Source: Bigelowiella natans CCMP2755 (lineage: Eukaryota > Protista > Cercozoa). From it: a DNA stretch of 64,000 nt. A model generated the notes under the pieces. It made no database searches, was not told where the DNA came from, and saw only the letters and a program-made list of their open reading frames with translations. A program made the translations under genes and the position numbers. Below are positions 117-39,450 of the stretch, one piece after another. The first letter of the stretch is position 1. Each line of letters opens with the position of its first letter. Where the stretch lies: NCBI GenBank assembly GCA_000320545.1, contig ADNK01003276.1:115315-179314 (forward strand), given 5' to 3'.

Positions 117-3100
117 GGTGGCAACCTCTACGGACAGATAGGAGATGGTAAAACTAATGCCAAACCGATTTTCTCTAAACCCAAAATTGATAGTAGAATC
201 TCTGCTTCGTTGCGTTATAATTCATTCTTAGAAATGATAATAGTAAATGAGAAAATATTGATGGCCAGGTACTCAAACACATCGACCGACACCCGTAGCT
301 GTGTCATCGCTTTCAAATGTGAGTTTCTCTCATTTTTTATTTCTTCTCTCCCCCCCCCCCCTTCCCTCCATTCAAGCAAGCAATTTGGTTTCATCTAATC
401 GCTGTCTGTCGCTGTTTATCCGTCGATATCTGTTCTCCACCAACGTCGCAAACCGGCCTAAGGCCTCTTATCACCAAACACCCTTCGCCAGCATTGCCTA
501 CAGCTGACCGCAGAAACGCCTGAAACCCTTACTTACAGGTTTCTTTTGTCACTGGTGGGGGTTACCACACGTGTGCAATTCACTCTGGTGGCAATCTCTC
601 ATGTTGGGTAAGAGCCAACTAGATCTTTCGATGAAAGAAGTTTCTGCATAGCTCGTCCTCGTCGTCGTCCTTCCTCCTCCTCCTCCTCTCCCCCCTCCCC
701 TCCTCTAAGCTACTTCTTTGAATAGGGAAGGAACACATGGGGGCAATGTGGCAACGGAAGAATGATATCCGCCGAGACGACGCCACAACATGTAATATTA
801 ATCGAAGTGCTACAACCATCTGAGGATGGGGATGGGCCCTTGATGCAAGACCTTCTCTCTCGTTTAAGTCACACGAGTCCGCTCTGTGGTAAACATATGG
901 CCGATTAACCACTCAATCTAGGAATAACTATATAGGTACCCCTCCCTGCTGCGGCCACGAAAGTTGCTTTAGCACGTGCTGTGTCGTGTGCCCTTCTTTC
1001 CACACAGAGGTGAGTGCTTCTCTGTCCAATCAGCATTGAGATGAACCGACTCGCGTTGGTTAGTAGATTGGGGAGTTGAGAGGCTGAAAGCATCAGGCCA
1101 ATGGAATAGAGGAGATACAACCTTGCGTGCAGAGTCGGCACGTGCTAGAAGGCCTTTTGTGTGCTGAGCCCGAAAACAACGAATGTTATTGGGCGAAATC
1201 TTCGGCATTTCCATGCATCTACTAAACAAAATCCATGGCTCTTGATAGCGTTTGATTGGCTTTTAATGCCTATATGCCTTTTCACCAGAATTATGTGCTG
1301 GGGCGAAAACACCTACGGCGTTGTTGGAGATGGTACCTATATCAATAGGACTTCACCTAGGTGTGTCACCAACCAATAATGCCATCTTACAGTAGATAGG
1401 TTACTACTGCTATCGTCAATCTGCACTTCCTTTCGGCTATCAACTCTCCTATCCTATTTGCACGCATGATCATCTTACATTGGTGGTCGCTGGAACACAT
1501 TATTTCCTCTGCTTGCTGCGCAGATATGTTGACGTCTCGTCCAGCGAAAGATTTTCCGACATCTCGGCTGGGTTTCACCACATTTGTGCCGTCAAAGCTG
1601 ATGGTCCGTCTTGCGAGGATTGATTCCGCAGTTTATCAATAATGAGTAGAAGGCGGCGTGTAACTGATGAGATGCTCGTCAATAGGTTGTGGGATTATGT
1701 GCTGGGGCTCAAACACTTTTGGACAACTGGGTGTTGGCAGTAATACTGCTCAAAATAAACCTGTGGGAACGCTAACGGCTCACTGGTAATATGCCCTACT
1801 CTCTTTGGCCATCAAGCGGTTACAAAATCTACTACATTTCATGAATGTGCCTTGCAAGGTTCAACATGCGTGTTTACGTCCAGGAATGTACACAACACAA
1901 ACATAATTATTCTCATGGATTTGCTGTTAGAGCAGCTGCTTCACACATGTGTGAGGGATAGAAAAGATTGAATGCGCACCGAGAGCAACAACAATTTTTG
2001 GGAAAGATTCCAATTCCATCACTTCTGCATTTGTCGTCAGTATTACTCGGGCCCCCACAACGTTAACGCCAACGATATCACCACCCACGACTGCCAATCC
2101 GACCACTACTTCTCCTTCATACAGCCCATCCACTGTCAGTCCATTAACATTCTCGCCCACGAAGGTAATAAGCCAACTGGTACTTCTCTCCTCCGTAAGA
2201 AAACCATAAAATACGGGACTAGTCGGGACAAATAAAACGCGTAACATGCACACAACACATAACGGACACAGATGTGCACCTACCAGTAGCTGGATTCAAT
2301 TCCATTCTCATAATTGATAAAAACAAATGAAATAGAACAGATAATAGCCCACGCTTTTTCTGTGTGCGTGTGAGGCAGGGAGAGAGAGGAGGGGGGAAGG
2401 AGAGAAGAATGTAGATTGGGAACACCTGCGGGCAGTGTTGTCCCTGAATTCAAGTTAAATTAGAAAGGGAAAGGGAAATGTAAAACTCGATTTTCTTCTT
2501 ATTATTATTGCAGTTGGGGCCTACACCTATTTCAGCGCAGTTTTCCGACACATACCAATCAGTGCGCATGAGTTTCCACCGCAGTACAAACCAGCCGGTT
2601 GAACTGACCCTGAAAGCGACCTGCGATGCTCTACTTCATCCTTCTTCCGTGGCATTACTCGGCACAAATTACGGGTGGTAAGCTGTTTACGATGATGATG
2701 ATGATGATGATGATAATGCTGAGAGGGAGATCATTAACCATGTGCGTTTATTTCGTGCGTGATTCCTCCCTGCGGCCGCTTTGTGATGATTCTGCTGTCG
2801 CCTTCCTTCCTATGATGTTCATCTCGGTTGTTCTTCGGCCTTTTGGTTGTCACCACTTTACACTATTCTTCCACCTTGTCATTCCGTTCTCAACTGTCGG
2901 CAACACGCAGGTGCTATTGGGAGGGCCCGACAGTGTTTGTTGTCACGCTAGGGGATGGCTTTCTTCTCGTTCCGGGAAATACGCTGACTCTCATCCAGGA
3001 CACTATCCAGGCCGAGAACAATGCGCTTGAGAGAAATGGCGATTCAGCAGTGGTAAGAATTGTCATTATACATGTGGAGTTACTGATTGTTCACAGAGGG

Positions 3101-22364: not shown

Positions 22365-25068
22365 TCATGCTTGTTGTTGAGGCTGCTCTAGGAATGGCTC
22401 TTGCCAGGCCATTGGAACATCGCTAACCCGTTTCTTCTTAATCTTCACGAAGCTATTTCTACACGCGGGTGATAATTATAGCATACATACATATAGAGTA
22501 ATGAATACGCGGGTTTGAGGACGGACAACACTGTGTCTTCTAATGCGCTTTCGGGTTGTCCTTTTGGTCTTAGATATTTTTATAGGCATAATCTATTTAC
22601 TCACTTGTCACGTTTGCTTGCATCCTGAACCTCGACCTCCTTCGCTTCGATCGCCTGAGACGACGTTTAGCATTAATTCAGCGGAGAAAGTTGGGATTGC
22701 ATATATCACCAAAGTTGCAATGGCCAAGAATATGCGCCATTCATATCGGGTACACACAAGGGCCTGCACATACTCTACGTAGCAAGTATACATACATACA
22801 ATACATACAATACATACACCAAACAGATATAACATGTTAAAAATATACTGAAGAAATCGCATGTCGGTGTGCGCTTGCGCGTGTATACTATGTGTTTTTG
22901 GATGCAGGTGGATAGAGAAATGACCTTCACTTCTAAGATCTCTACGTTTCCAAGCTGCACATATAGGAAAACAACACCAATTCTCATACACATACACTCG
23001 ACGCGTTTGAAAATTCAAGCTCTTGAGTTCGGGTTGTTCTGCTTGCAGTCCCACCTTCTACATAGACAACAAATCCCAATGCTGCTATTACTCCTACTAC
23101 AACACTTACACTACCTTTCTTGGAGAGACGCATTCTTTCACGCACATTATGGCCACAGTCAGCAGGACCACACATCCCATCGACACCATTGCGACACCTA
23201 CATGATGATCATCACAAGCAGGGAACAGATACCAAAGGTAACGATTAACCTAACCGCTATGACTTGCTCCGGATATTCCTCCCCCCCCCCCCCCCCCCTC
23301 CCCCACCTCTCATTGTCAATCACGACTACAAAACTGTGTTCCAAGGCAAAACAAATCGAGCGAAATTATGACGGTCAACAGCAGCAGCAGCAACAGCAGA
23401 TAAGTCGTAAGTTGATATCCTATTGTAGCACCCATGAAGGTATTTCTGCCTCCTATCCATGAGTCCTTCGTCAGAATGATGGCTTTTCCTGTGGTGTGTG
23501 TACGCGTACATGTTACCCGATAAGAAGAACCACATAGCATGAAGGATACAGTTTATTCAGCAACAATGTGCAGAAGATGATGCTAGTTGAGACGCACGAC
23601 AGAAACAACAGCCATGACTAGCATCATATTCACCCACCAAAGATTGATTAGCATAAACAAAATAAGAAAGAAAAGATCAAAGGATAATTTTTCTTCTAAT
23701 GTTGAAGCGAACCTCCCTCAAACGGAGACGTCACGAAACGTGCTGTTACTCTGAAGACAATGCTGTCGCCCTTGTTCAAATCCTGATCTATCCGAGCGTA
23801 TTTCTTCATGAATACTCCTGGTAATAATAATTACGAAGATGGCAATAATGGGAGAAGAGAGCGATGCGGTTATTAATATGTGCTAAGACGATCTGACGAA
23901 ATACGTACGAAATTGCTACTGCTATCACGTCCTTCATACCACAACAGCCACTCCCTCGCCCCCCTCCCTCCCTTGCCCCTTCTTTCTTACACCGCTACAT
24001 TCATCACAGAATTGAGAGAAGAAGAAACCAAAAAGCAAAAGGACCGAGAGCCGCAGTGCGCATCCAGACCATGAAGTGCTCGTTCTGAGAAGCAGAAACA
24101 ACAACTGCATTACTACGGAGATATGAAGGAGTATAACTTTATTGGGCGAGAGGTGTATTCACGACTACCTTCTGCCCTTCCTCCTCCGGAATGACGCCAG
24201 GGTACATCTCGTACAAGCACTCGTACTCCGTCGAGTTGCAGAATTCAGGGTATCTTCATAATCATGGCGCAAACATGACAAACGAAGAAGATAAGCTTAC
24301 GTCAGCAATTATTTCTCTCGTGCTTTTTATTGAGATGTGCTACTTATTTGCTGTGCTACTCATGCCCCTTCCCTCCCCCCTCATCGATAACTGAATGAAA
24401 TGTATACCCGCTCGGGTTGCCGAATCTTTTATTGCGGTCAACCTAATTTACCAGAGAATATTTGTCTCAATGAACTTTTGTTAATTTTTCAGATAGGTGC
24501 CCTCCCTCCCCCTTCCCCCCCACATCTATAGTTCTTATCTTACATGCCAGCTGATATCATCCTCAGACATGGTGATTGAGGTCGGTGAGATTAGCTCGAA
24601 GGTATCATTGAACATCGAGTGAGCCTGGAGTCCACAAGGCACGTACCTGCCGAAAGAGACCAGAAGATAGTAAGGGGGTGGACGATAGCGGTATAGATGC
24701 AGATAACATTTGTTGGAAGCTATGTGATCGTTCTAATTACTACTCAGACTACCCGAAGTGTGCGGAATTTTGATTTCCATTAACATAAATCAATCACTAT
24801 ACATATGACACGATGATTCATGCTAATTATTAGCCATTCTTCGTGTGTGTCGGCGCGTGTAACGGGAGGGGGGGGGGGGGGACAAATCATCGTTAGTTAA
24901 TTTACGGACGTTTCTCCATCCTCTGAGTTGAAGTATTTGCAGTATTGCGTGCTGGTGTCTTTAGTGCTCCTATTATTTCATAGCAATGAAGAAATAAATG
25001 ATGATGATGATGATGATGATGACGATGACTCTGATTGTGCTAAATGGGGGATGTACTGCTGTTGACAT

Positions 25069-25101
<33 letters not shown>

Positions 25102-26087
25102 TACCCACCAGTACTGCAAACCTGCCACTTACTATTCTCATTCCCTCCATTTCTTAGTTACTACTTACACACTTACCCGTCGAGTTGATAGGAGTAATGG
25201 TCTTTCGCATAACTCTGGTAGTTTTGATAGAAGTTGGTGAGGCCGTACCGCACGAATACCGGAGCTTTCATGTCGTTCTTCAGATCCATTGTGATGTCGC
25301 ACACGCGCTCGGTTTGATTTCGAGCGGCAGCAAGCTTGCAATCCTGATAATCAAGCTCGTATCCAAGGCTTTCATAGTCAGATCTGTCGCCTTCGTACAT
25401 CACCATCTGATATGAAGCTTCGTTGGACCCCATTATCACCTTTAGGGGGGGGGGGGGGGTTGGATGTGGGAAAAAAAAAAGGGAAGTAAGCTCGTGGACA
25501 CTATGCACATGTTTGGAGAGGTGTGCATGCGGATGCGCGAGGGATTCGTTGAATTTCCCGTCATCCAGAGTTGTGAATCAGAATTAACGAGATAAGTGTT
25601 GGACCACACATTATTGGTATCTTCTCGTCTGAGACAAGAATGATATCACTTTTTTCGGTTTTGTATTGTGTCATCATCTTCTTAGGAGCTACTGACTAGC
25701 GTAGCTGTGCTTTCACCCCCCCCCCCCCCTCTCTCTCTTTCTCATTTACCAAGCCTCCGATTAGGATGAAGAAGCACCCAACAATAGACAGCACAATCAT
25801 GGTGACGCGAGGCGTTAAAGGCTTCTGTGCTCGAGGCAGTCTTTGCTGCAGGAAACGACCGCACCTATTTGTACACCATTATCCACACACAATTAATGCT
25901 GGTGGTGATAATGATGAAGATGGTGATGATGCAACGTTCCTTGATATAAGTGAAGATTGTTGCCTGAATTTTTCATCTATGCATTGCTCATTATCCACAC
26001 TCACATTCAATACTACCATGTTGACTCGTCAGCGGGGCGATTAGAGTGCAGCTTTGTGTCTTCAAAGGCGTGGCCCTTCATAGATAC
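22365..26087 (-). CDS. CDC50: CDC50/LEM3/ALIS flippase beta-subunit coding region (probably fused to the upstream P4-ATPase; last exons uncertain)
   Basis: SNRPADESTW|CGRFLQQRLP plus TM1 (25750-25864); PVFVRYGLTNFYQNYQSY; PCGLQAHSMFNDTF; NEHFMVWMRTAAL; SWIGGRNTFMG|VAMVSMGCVVLLTVAIMC (TM2) ...SPRK|VG. Extended C-terminal tail. Confidence 0.92.
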
Positions 26088-26260
26088 CTAGGAGGAAGAA
26101 GGTAAATTAGGATTCGGATGTCTGTCTCGTGATGACGACAATAGCAGCAACAACATCATCAACAACAACAACAACAACTCAAATGTTTCTGGAACAAAAC
26201 CGAATTGGAAGTTCTCTCAAAAGTGAGAAATAAGAGTTATCTGTTGCGCAATCAACTTAC

Positions 26261-26338
26261 GTTTATATGCGTATCCTTTCTATCCGCTTTGACCCGACCT
26301 GCTGCAATACGGCGAGAGAGGGTCAAACACCGTGCACA

Positions 26339-26383
<45 letters not shown>

Positions 26384-26394
26384 CACGCACACTC

Positions 26395-26442
<48 letters not shown>

Positions 26443-27249
26443 CACAAAGTTTAGCATGAGATCTAGCGAGAGATGATCGCTCTACCATTCTGGCTTTTAG
26501 AGCTACTCGCATTGTTCTCCTGATCTTTACGTTCAAGACTCTTCTTCTCCTCCTACAAAGGTCGGTAGTAGTAGTAGTAGTAGTAGTTGTTGTTGTTGTA
26601 GCACATACACATCGATGGTCATCGAGGAATAAACAGATGAATTGATCTTGCTCTGTTGATATAGCTTCTCTAAGCAACCATCGACGTGTTCGAATCACTG
26701 CTGCTGCTGCTATGAAAATGTACATAATGAGCCGTTGATTGCATTTCTTGATCTCCTTACCTCCGTGAGTTTGCGTGTGGTCATGGCCCTGTGGAGAGGT
26801 GCTGGAGTAGCTCCAGGATGGGAAAAGTCGAAACCCTTCGTCGTGCCCTGCTTTTTCTCTGATGAGAAGCAAACGTGAGAAATAGGAGGAAAACAATGTG
26901 CACACTAGAGAGAGAGAGCGAGAGAGCATCTTCTGCCGCACCCTCCTTTTTATTCTTTCATCTATCTATGGCATAACGTTCCTTACCGTATCTGCCTAGT
27001 CGAATTGTATATAAAACAGGCCTTATATATTCTATAATTCATTCTCTCGCTACAGCTACTACTATGCACATTCTCCAATTCCATGCTCACCACCATTGAT
27101 TCTACAACACTAATAATGATAACACAACACCTTCGGCTGATGCCTTTTCTAGCTCATGCATCTCAATGTCATTTAACTCTTCATGAACCTCTTTCGCGAC
27201 CCCCCCTGCATAGGTATAGGTAGTAGTGTGTGTAAGAGTGTGTGTGTGT

Positions 27250-27289
<40 letters not shown>

Positions 27290-27536
27290 CAAATTTTGAC
27301 TTCAAAAGTGTGAACAAAACAAAACGACAGCGACGAATATCCAGGCTTCGGACATTTATATCATCGATTTTTGTGTGCATAGCCAACAGAAACAACGACA
27401 GCCACGTGGGAGAGTGTTGTCGCCGCACCTTGATCCCTAAGTTGTTGTTTCACTTGTTTCCCGAGATTCTTCATCACTTCATCCTTGTTCATCATGTAGT
27501 CGGCCTATGATGGCATTAATTCGTATCAGGAGATAC

Positions 27537-27569
<33 letters not shown>

Positions 27570-27976
27570 CCACTATCACGAACAACAAGTCGAAGAGCTC
27601 CCAAGAAAATTGTCGAATATTATGAAATAATGCAAAGAAAAGATGAGTCAGACATACGCAAAAACTTCCGAGAAAAAGAAAGATTCTCAATATTCTTCCT
27701 TGACGGTTGAGACTACAGAAACCGTGGGGGGTGATGCAACTTAGCCTCTGTGCATCATCACTGTTGGGCTGAACGACGTGTGCTAGTAAGTGAAGTACCT
27801 CGACAGCAAAGTCCATGACGGTCGGAAAGAATTCTCTCGATACCCAATGCAGTACGAAGTCAAAGTATAAAGCGGTTGCAGGCACCCCGAACAACACGAC
27901 CTTGATAATGTCATTTCGATGAATTGATATGAAATTAATACTAACGAGGGAACAGTACCACACACAAACACACACA

Positions 27977-28007
<31 letters not shown>

Positions 28008-28216
28008 GTACAATGCAGAGATTTTTTAATTTTGGTATTTCCATCCAGTCGTTCTTGCTATCACGCCTCATAGGCCGCATTTTGTTTGTGGTGGTAGTAC
28101 CCAGAAAATTGCGCTACCCATCATTTGATAAGGCACCTAGAAGGATGAGGATGAGGATGAGGATGAGGATGAGGATGAGGCGGTAATTTCTCAATAATCA
28201 AATATCACAGCACACA

Positions 28217-28289
<73 letters not shown>

Positions 28290-28461
28290 GCACAAGGTGC
28301 TACCCTAATAATCGCTTTCTGCAAAAAGGCAAAAAAATCAAAACGAACAAACGAAATGGGAAGTAAGTATAGCTAAGTATAGCAGGTACCCAGTAGAAGT
28401 TCCAGGAGAGATCATACCATACACCGTAAATTACGAGGAATAGAAAATACCTGTGTACGTG

Positions 28462-28504
<43 letters not shown>

Positions 28505-29937
28505 ACGCATAGGATGTGTTCACTACATCCCCGATGTCTTTCATCTACTGCTACTACTACTGCTACTACTACTACTACCACGATTACTCTACCCGAGAAA
28601 CGAGATGGCAAGCACAATTGCCGTGATGGAGGTCCATGTTACAGTAATGAGCATAACCTGTTTTGCGAATGAATGAGATGTCCGCACTCACATCAAGAAG
28701 ATGAGAGAGGAAGATGACTACGCAACAATAGGAAGTGCGAGCACGTAGCAGCAGCAGCAGTAGTAGTATTAGTAGTAGTAGCAGCTGTTGTAGTAGTACC
28801 CTGTACTGGACTGTAAAAACAAGGCACGAGAACACCAGAGTTCCGAACACGTAGAGGCCTCCCAAATCCGTCTGTGAGGGAGAGTGGCGGTGGGGGGAGG
28901 TGGTAAGAGATGACATTTTCATATGCATCATCATAAGCACCAGCTAATCATGAACAATGAGTAGAAATCTTTGTTACTTTTATACTTTAAAATCACGCAC
29001 ACATACATATATCATTTACTTTTATACATTAAATTTACGCACACACACACACACACACACACATAAGTCTTTTTCTTTTGATACAAAATTTATTTCCCAA
29101 GATTCGCAGCCCGCAGCAACAATAAACCCCCAAAAAACCCGACCTGATCCAATCCAAAATAAGAGAAATACGGCCAGAAGACGACGATGAGAGAGTGAAC
29201 GATGGCAACGGCCAGAAGACGACGATGAGAGAGTGAACGATGGCAAGGAGAATGTATTGGATGATGATGCGGGAATTCAGATCCAGGTTCAGCCGCTGAA
29301 TAGATGGATAATCGCAGGAAGTTAGTTTTTTTTCACAATGTTGATGTCAAAGTGCTATGCTCCTCTTCTACGCAATGTTACGATAAATCACCACAACCAC
29401 AACCACAACCACAACCACAACCACAACCACCTCCACCATCATCATCATCATCATCATCATGGTGATATTCGCCATCAGAACTACATATCTCTATCACACA
29501 AACAACCCCACCCCAGTCATGTAGAGCGCAGGGAACATTTCCACAGTTTCTGAACGGACGTCTTGATCCAAGCAGCCGACGGCGCATATAGGAAGCATCG
29601 TGTGTATGTTGAAACTTGTGTATACCTTTCAGGTATAATGATGATGACGACGACGATGAAGATGATGATGAGTAAGACGCATCACGTAAAGCGACAACAT
29701 TATCTGCAACCATTGAATTTCTTTTGAATTACCCACGAATCGTAAAGGGACGTGCCAGAAAAGCCAGTGGTGAAAGAGAAGTAAAGTAATGTGAGCGTCA
29801 AGCAGAAGTTCTTGTAGAAGACGTACGTGATCACCTGATGACGAGTTGTTTGTTGTCACAGGGATGAATCAATTCGGCAATCTTCAAGATAAATACACAA
29901 CCACACGCTCGTGTCCTCGGATGGTGATAATGATGTC

Positions 29938-38561: not shown

Positions 38562-39450
38562 ATGATTCATTTCATCCTCCTCCAGGTAGAACTGATGCAT
38601 GCACACTCGATGTGTATCAGTTTCATACTCATGTACATACTACTTGCCGTTTACATCGTTTCCAAGTCTACAAATCTAACGATGGAAAAATGTTTTAGAA
38701 CAAGCAGGGTAAAACTCGCATTAGTAAATGGTATTCGCCCTTCGAGCATGAAGAGAAGAGAAGACTTGAGAGTGAAATCCACAGGGTTCTCATTCGAAGG
38801 TTGTCACTCAAAATGTGCCATAGCTTTATGCGATGGAAGTGTCCTGATGAGATTGTATTCTGTGCATAAAATTCTATTGGACTGGTGCTAAATGCATTAC
38901 ATTCATTTCATGTAGACCCACGAAGTTCTCATCTTTCATCGAGTTTCGTAAATATACTCTGGTATGTTCTAATGGTTAGAATGTTCATACAAAGTTTAAT
39001 TCATTTATTCTTTTCATTCTTTAAGGTGTACCGCCGCTATGCTGGTAAACAGTAAACAATGCAAACACAAATAGTTATTTGTTTAACTTTCAACATCTTC
39101 ATGACAGTCGTTTCTAATAAATATTTGTTTTTATATCGAAGGACTGTACTTCACTCTCTGCGTAGGTCTGCCCCAATACATTTTAAAATTTGATATGTGG
39201 TGAAATATAATGCGTGAATTTAGATCCGAATGACAACGAACTCTCCTACCTCGAAGCAATTCACCTTTTCGTCGAAATTTTAGATAAATATTTCGGTTCT
39301 GTATGCGAGCTGGATCTTGTTTTCGGTTTCTATAAAGTTTTTGCGCTTTTGGATGAATTTGTTTGCGGAGGCGAAATCCAAGAAACCAGCAAGAAGATTG
39401 TTATGGGGCGCATAAGAGCGTTAGAAGATCATGAGAAGAAGAGTAAGTAA
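38562..39450 (+). CDS. AP2S1: Clathrin adaptor small (sigma) subunit, AP-2 type
   Basis: Spliced: MIHFILLQ|[12 protein letters not shown]...|VYRRYAG|LYFTLCV|[39 protein letters not shown]...[17 protein letters not shown] and ELDLVFxFYKV favour sigma-2. Confidence 0.9.

Follow-up and report, generated by a model that had tools for sequence, protein, structure and literature searches.

The stretch of DNA analysed in this study, a 64,000-nucleotide (nt) window of the Bigelowiella natans genome, carries a gene in which a P4-ATPase is found to be joined in frame to a CDC50-type beta-subunit, and all features of this flippase gene lie on the minus strand. P4A flippases need CDC50 for their folding, exit from the endoplasmic reticulum (ER) and activity, and in the characterised members it is separately encoded. 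The whole transcription unit extends from 38053 to 21668 and is defined by mapping of the public transcript contig L016 (5271 nt), which is collinear with 66 exons of the window at 98-100% identity per exon, all introns being of the GT-AG type. The complete open reading frame (ORF) of this contig (positions 105-4985) encodes a protein of 1626 amino acids (aa; P0077), which was placed exon by exon on the window using tblastn. The start codon corresponding to contig position 105 was verified as ATG at 37949-37947, and the stop codon given by the same contig is TGA at 22367-22365. The 46 exons between 37949 and 27799 encode the catalytic part of the P4-ATPase (about aa 1-1109), as delimited by Pfam domains, motifs and matches in PDB. 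This is a real fused gene, with one mRNA and one frame of 1626 codons, and it very probably encodes a natural one-chain P4-ATPase-CDC50 flippase.

The junction between the two parts was read on the minus strand from 28500 to 25000, each exon being translated in its own phase without joining. All eight junction exons are preceded by AG and followed by GT, carry over 0, 0, 1, 1, 0, 1, 0 and 2 bases, and contain no stop. The first of them is the exon of transmembrane (TM) segment 10, the last of the P4-ATPase part (27900-27799), and it is followed by three exons of the ATPase C-terminal tail (27504-27429, 27205-27131 and 26858-26761), with the motif GFDFS translated from 26835-26821. Two linker exons (26552-26486 and 26301-26261) lead from the tail to the first CDC50-type exon (26087-26017), which encodes the cytosolic N-terminus up to ...NRPADESTW and contains an in-frame ATG at 26081-26079. 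The exon at 25864-25750 encodes the motif CGRFLQQRLP and, directly after it, a hydrophobic helix, which is TM1 of the CDC50 part (aa 1276-1294). The initial annotation had described this series as eight GT-AG exons in phase without a stop, and all of them were present at the coordinates it gave, with the same peptides and with GFDFS, the ATG and CGRFLQQRLP in the translation; the exon ends of L016 at the junction are also the same. When the donor at 26486 is left unused a stop is reached within ten codons, and when the donor at 26261 is left unused it is reached within three (...THINVS and stop), so that the fusion needs both introns to be spliced out.

The joining of these exons in RNA has been followed in public sequencing data. 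About 20 sequencing runs of one organism hold about one fifth of the sampled words, as expected of exon-only (RNA) contigs, and four runs were aligned to positions 23000-28900 of the window (5901 letters). In each of two runs all joints of the chain lie in one contig, which has a length of 4919 nt and a depth of 69 in X1 (study P1) and a length of 2552 nt and a depth of 79 in X3 (study P2). The joints found in the RNA are 27799>27504, 27429>27205, 27131>26858, 26486>26301, 26261>26087, 26017>25864 and 25750>25439, along with eight further joints across the CDC50 exons down to 23197, and the joint 26761>26552 is supported by the within-contig distances and by L016. The skipped segments are bounded by CT..AC when read on the plus strand, corresponding to GT-AG introns of the minus strand, and the contigs of X1 and X3 are thus spliced RNA. 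The contig pieces at 26760 and 25862 are separated by 180 positions, which corresponds to 67 + 41 + 71 = 179 nt of exon when overhangs of one and two bases are allowed for, so there is no room for anything else between these two points. Bins lying only in introns have a depth of about 2 (about 3% of the spliced contig) as against 69-79. The joints 26486>26301 and 26261>26087, for which the initial annotation had sought RNA evidence, are therefore found in contigs of two studies. That annotation had also named the pattern that would speak for separate genes, namely transcript ends at 26100-27500 together with a separate start feeding the ATG at 26081; in the assembled contigs neither polyadenylated, loose or clustered ends in this interval nor such a start were seen.

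A trans-splice acceptor of a downstream cistron at 26088 was also considered and was rejected, as this acceptor is cis-joined to 26261 in both RNA runs and no loose ends are found. A tandem CAG|CAG acceptor is present at 26298-26303. The RNA contigs and P0077 use position 26301 (...SQNAGRV...), and the JGI gene model P0082 takes the acceptor at 26298, 3 nt downstream (...SQNGRV...), with one linker residue fewer. At 25777 the window has C where all covering runs (X1, X3 and X20) have G, the protein being unchanged, and L016 likewise has one mismatch in the exon 25864-25750; the difference at 25777 is either a base specific to the window or an assembly error.

The ATPase half of P0077 has shown matches to PF16209 (PhoLip_ATPase_N; aa 36-93, 55.5 bits against a Pfam cut-off of 29) and PF16212 (PhoLip_ATPase_C; aa 859-1104, 234.3 bits, cut-off 28.3), and PF13246 (Cation_ATPase) and PF00702 (Hydrolase) are also found. 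The P-type motifs are all present: DGET at aa 196, DKTGTLT at aa 438, TGDK at aa 693 and GDGAND at aa 832. In comparison with PDB, aa 39-1146 match ATP8A1 (6k7g_A) with an expectation value (E) of 3e-202 and Drs2p with E 1e-199, and the matches to Neo1 (E 4e-107) and PMCA (E 1e-12) are weaker. From these sequence comparisons, the ATPase half is assigned to the P4A-type flippases of the ATP8A/Drs2 kind and not to P4B (Neo1/ATP9) or the cation pumps. All full-length fused proteins, including the one begun by the first coding exon of the window (37949-37930) and P0076, P0089, P0093 and P0094, start with MG followed by S or several C within ten residues (MGAVSSW, MGGLCSCLC, MGLLYSCLC, MGGSLGCCC and MGSCQSLC); such N-termini resemble an N-myristoylation plus palmitoylation signal.

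The CDC50 half is recognised by PF03381 at aa 1319-1569 (215.3 bits, cut-off 28.6), and aa 1257-1560 match CDC50A (6k7g_C) in PDB with E 1e-38, so that both chains of the solved ATP8A1-CDC50A complex are matched by the one chain of P0077. FLQQRLP at aa 1258 is an FxQQxLP-type CDC50 N-terminal motif, and an ectodomain containing six Cys and three N-x-S/T sequons lies between two strong hydrophobic helices (aa 1276-1294 and 1543-1561). The ectodomain is encoded by eight exons (25439-25177, 24969-24910, 24646-24544, 24442-24408, 24253-24169, 24084-24045, 23817-23713 and 23488-23432), identified from RNA joints, phases and PF03381, and a search with a single one of these (25179-25439) retrieves CDC50 proteins. 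According to the phases and L016, TM2 of CDC50 (aa 1543-1561) and a PRK motif are encoded at 23197-23115. To our knowledge, every characterised CDC50/LEM3 member is a separate polypeptide. The CDC50 part found here is not, being joined in frame to the ATPase, and is therefore classed here as a domain of the CDC50 type rather than a free subunit.

The C-terminal exons of the gene are located at 22954-22925, 22654-22605 and 22458-22364, as given by L016 and by comparison of two isoforms. P0077 keeps the exon 22458-22364 and ends in ...EQPQQQA, whereas P0081 omits it and ends in ...KSSHNIA, so alternative splicing changes the cytosolic C-terminal end of the CDC50 half. The last exon (21952-21668) is 3' untranslated region in the P0077 isoform and forms the coding end in the P0081 isoform.

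The window gene is not the only one of its kind in the genome of B. natans. A six-frame census of the genome found CDC50 matches on seven contigs and PhoLip_ATPase_C on five, and both domains on only two, namely the contig of the window (C461) and C2867. At about 11.8-25.5 kilobases (kb) of C2867 (L013:3776 to L014:7508) a P4-ATPase, GFSFSHPG, NRPSDD..FFQQTLP and a full series of CDC50 exons are found, all on one strand and within about 14 kb. By its sequence, C2867 appears to hold a second collinear fused locus, a paralogue of the window gene, with which it shares the order of parts; identity is about 50-78% in the longer ATPase matches, with greater divergence in the CDC50 half. CDC50 loci without a P4 partner occur on C2987, C2909, C2041, C2196 and C1439, and unfused P4-ATPases on C719, C2228 and C2650, so that the genome retains the classical two-gene system alongside the fused one. 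The P4-ATPase of C719 has its PhoLip_ATPase_C match (1503-2258, minus strand) in a stop-free frame of 1203 aa and is apparently intron-free; the other P4 genes of the genome are split into dozens of exons.

Fusions of the same order have been found in related algae. The CDC50 exon was searched against 1.84 billion protein representatives, and long proteins were screened in a collection of 5.8 billion. The best match (P0001, 1481 aa, at residues 1234-1318) itself carries PhoLip_ATPase_C and CDC50, and comparison of its C-terminal region with the long proteins gave eight clusters with both domains. The fused clusters include P0077 itself, Lotharella globosa (taxid 91324), two genome models of Amorphochlora amoebiformis and several complete-ORF transcriptome entries, and the P4-tail-CDC50 architecture is seen in at least five chlorarachniophyte-type sequences beyond the B. 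natans gene. Hence, single proteins with PhoLip_ATPase_C and CDC50, which the initial annotation had suggested looking for in relatives, do exist in several species. One further protein with both domains (P0089, 1650 aa) is encoded on a metagenome scaffold of 66 kb (L017:2001-6953; ENA ERZ23491500, scaffold_545) by a single ORF of 4953 nt without interruption. As this ORF has no introns, the fusion is there independent of splicing, and it is the strongest single item of evidence for a selected fusion. The lack of introns in P0089 is odd when compared with the 66 exons in B. natans, and its neighbours are without a Pfam match on record. The fusion predates the split of the chlorarachniophyte genera and was duplicated; B. 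natans has the second collinear locus, and Amorphochlora has two paralogues.

The most distant match of the search with the P0001 region was found to be a fusion of the reverse order. In this cryptophyte type CDC50 comes first (TM segments at aa 44-62 and 352-370) and is followed by a full P4-ATPase according to Pfam; the cluster contains Guillardia theta UniRef100_A0A7S4UTM1 (1734 aa) and fragments from Hanusia phi (P0084/P0080). Three more clusters share the CDC50-P4 order (P0095-P0097), and P0097 is an uninterrupted ORF of 1469 aa at L018:1653-6062 on a 75-kb metagenome contig. The cryptophyte fusions are like that of B. natans in having a full CDC50 and a full P4-ATPase in one chain and in standing as unremarked database models, but in them CDC50 is N-terminal. 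Between their CDC50 part and that of P0001, which is related to the B. natans protein, the identity is only 28%. On account of the reversed order and this low identity, the fusion has arisen at least twice.

The region that joins the two halves was compared in detail. In autoinhibited ATP8B1, ATP8A1 and Drs2 a tail motif (G/A)(Y/F)AFS occupies the ATP pocket (PMC9045818). In the alignment, GFAFS or GYAFS is found in six relatives of the window gene, each time with an invariant HPG behind it. Across the seven fused proteins, invariant residues extend across TM10, the tail keeps an invariant G-(F/Y)-x-F-S-H-P-G, and a variable stretch follows, after which conservation sets in again some 25 residues ahead of the CDC50 core (K-D-x-K-I-D ... 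D-x-K-L-x-x-N-R-P-x-D-E-S-T-W-C-G-R-F-L-Q-Q). Between the tail motif and NRPxDES there are 66-81 residues, with an open frame in all seven. In B. natans the linker has about 75 residues and is charged, variable and K/R-rich, and charged residues make up 36% of the 135 that separate TM10 from the CDC50 N-terminus. Since the tail motif has been kept, its autoinhibition probably still works.

A chain translated as one may also be cut within the variable linker, as in a polyprotein, to give separate alpha and beta subunits at a fixed 1:1 ratio. The stretch between the tail motif and CDC50, being poorly conserved, charged and K/R-rich, is indeed the kind of segment which proteases can reach, but no conserved cleavage motif is present in the alignment of the seven fused proteins. 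Moreover, tolerance of a permanent tether is the simpler explanation for two independent fusions of opposite order, and the joined ends are near each other in the known heterodimers. Both the ATPase C-terminus and the CDC50 N-terminus are cytosolic, and the topology is thus not violated by the fusion. Processing of this kind is considered unlikely.

Another possibility is that a separate P4-ATPase mRNA and a CDC50 mRNA starting near 26087, with translation from the ATG at 26081, do the work in the cell, the fused RNA being a conjoined or read-through by-product. The early stops behind unused donors at 26486 and 26261 would fit two such mRNAs, as would an in-frame Met at the place where CDC50 would begin, with a Met at or beside this position in five of the seven fused proteins, and assembled contigs would not reveal transcript ends. 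On the other hand, the other two proteins have no Met there, and residues upstream of its position are conserved in the same alignment. In two studies the spliced contig passes through both joints without branching, intron depth is about 3% of that of the contig, and the interval 26100-27500 is free of loose ends; complete fused ORFs occur in the transcriptomes of several species; the linker remains open over its 66-81 codons in all seven proteins; and in the case of P0089 the fused ORF needs no splicing at all. Together these observations make the two-mRNA explanation very unlikely. The ATG at 26081 is possibly a relic of a former CDC50 start.

The joining could finally be an artefact, in which neighbouring genes are linked by chance in-frame exons, by mis-assembly or by over-prediction of the gene model. 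The JGI model P0082 is in fact imperfect, with one exon omitted and a wrong one put in, and the window has a 38-nt tandem duplication (29171-29246, in the exon 29295-29144) with two copies where L016 has one. However, the same chain is obtained from RNA contigs of two studies, from L016, from genome models of another genus and from a metagenome ORF, and an artefact is therefore extremely improbable. P0082 is without the peptide of the exon 29295-29144 and so avoids the duplication, which is either an assembly error or a difference of strain or allele. The 38-nt repeat was also considered as a very small intron, and this was rejected as the unit has no AG and no GT-AG cut can remove it.

Some observations weigh against a functional one-chain flippase. 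If real, the two 38-nt copies would shift the frame of a TM-encoding ATPase exon in the sequenced strain. The tail motif of the window gene, GFDFS, carries D at a position that is A in the relatives and in the solved flippases. Assembled contigs are blind to transcript ends, minor isoforms and whole molecules, and the only run of raw reads (X21) has 10 reads over the aligned stretch and says nothing on ends or isoforms. An AlphaFold2 model of the C-terminal 667 aa (aa 960-1626), built with a seven-row alignment, has a mean predicted local distance difference test (pLDDT) score of 44.9 and a predicted template modelling (pTM) score of 0.35, which is too low to show packing in cis or to judge disorder of the linker. 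Cleavage of the linker or internal initiation at the Met encoded at 26081 may also occur.

The single 12-TM chain of P4-ATPase, tail and CDC50 that the initial annotation had put forward is supported by the complete 1626-aa ORF of the transcript, by both sets of domains and by the fused relatives. The frame encodes in order a complete 10-TM P4A flippase, a regulatory tail with GFDFS, the linker of about 75 residues and CDC50 with its N-terminus, TM1, glycosylated ectodomain and TM2, and the chain would be made and retained as one protein of about 180 kDa. The CDC50 half would fold back on the ATPase half in cis, as in the ATP8A1-CDC50A and Drs2p-Cdc50p complexes, and the linker would serve as a loose tether, long enough for the tail to reach the nucleotide-binding domain. 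The benefit would probably lie in an assured 1:1 stoichiometry, in ER exit and in co-targeting without a second gene.

The best solved counterparts of both halves are ATP8A1-CDC50A and Drs2p-Cdc50p (PDB 6k7g and 6roh), which the B. natans protein resembles in its catalytic motifs and probably in the type of its C-terminal tail motif. Those complexes are made of separate gene products that assemble in the ER, whereas in B. natans there is one frame, in which the tail motif, here GFDFS, is followed by a linker of about 75 residues. A different C-terminal extension is known from the P4-ATPase-guanylate cyclase chimeras (P4GC) of alveolates and some stramenopiles, which have not been found in rhizarians and still require a separate CDC50 for localisation (PMC13466520). 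Like the B. natans fusion, P4GC has an extra module at the C-terminus of the P4-ATPase, but the appended module is a cyclase and not the beta-subunit. A more speculative proposal is that the fusion does more than fix the stoichiometry and that the tether re-wires regulation. The motif that plugs the ATP site would be held between TM10 and TM1 of CDC50, so that release of autoinhibition is mechanically coupled to the beta-subunit, and the opposite-order fusions in chlorarachniophytes and cryptophytes, the two algal lineages which bear nucleomorphs, would stem from a common pressure to target the two obligate partners together in cells whose endomembranes are unusually complex. We regard this as a possibility with a rather small chance of being correct.

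Upstream of the flippase gene, a gene for the small (sigma) chain of a clathrin adaptor complex was identified by its last exon, on the plus strand at 39214-39447 (PF01217, E 9e-25). This exon lies about 1.2 kb past the 5' end of the flippase transcript (38053) on the opposite strand, and the two genes may be divergently transcribed.

In the full-text literature searched, a scope that leaves most subscription journals outside, no description of a natural P4-ATPase-CDC50 fusion in either order was found, and none is given in a 2024 review of P4-ATPases or in the 2026 paper on P4-ATPase-cyclase chimeras. Within the same full texts no paper mentions Cdc50 together with Bigelowiella, nor Cdc50 with Guillardia. 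The statement of the initial annotation that no natural example has been described is thus borne out for the searched literature, but fused gene models have been public since the JGI annotation. The 90% cluster of P0077 includes the JGI model Bigna1 91594 of B. natans, which already fuses both parts, and the architecture likewise stands unremarked in the Amorphochlora models and in Guillardia A0A7S4UTM1. The fused sequences being already public in this form, what is new is the covalent form, for which no description was found in the searched literature, and not the enzyme pair, which is known.

In practical terms, the gene could serve as a ready-made single-gene flippase for expression, structure work and complementation tests. 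If the one-chain reading is true, a one-chain flippase that has evolved twice, in opposite orders, would stand as proof from evolution that the two partners act as a fixed 1:1 unit. It would further mean that the transport cycle needs neither exchange of partners nor their dissociation, and that a regulatory tail fixed at both ends is tolerated.

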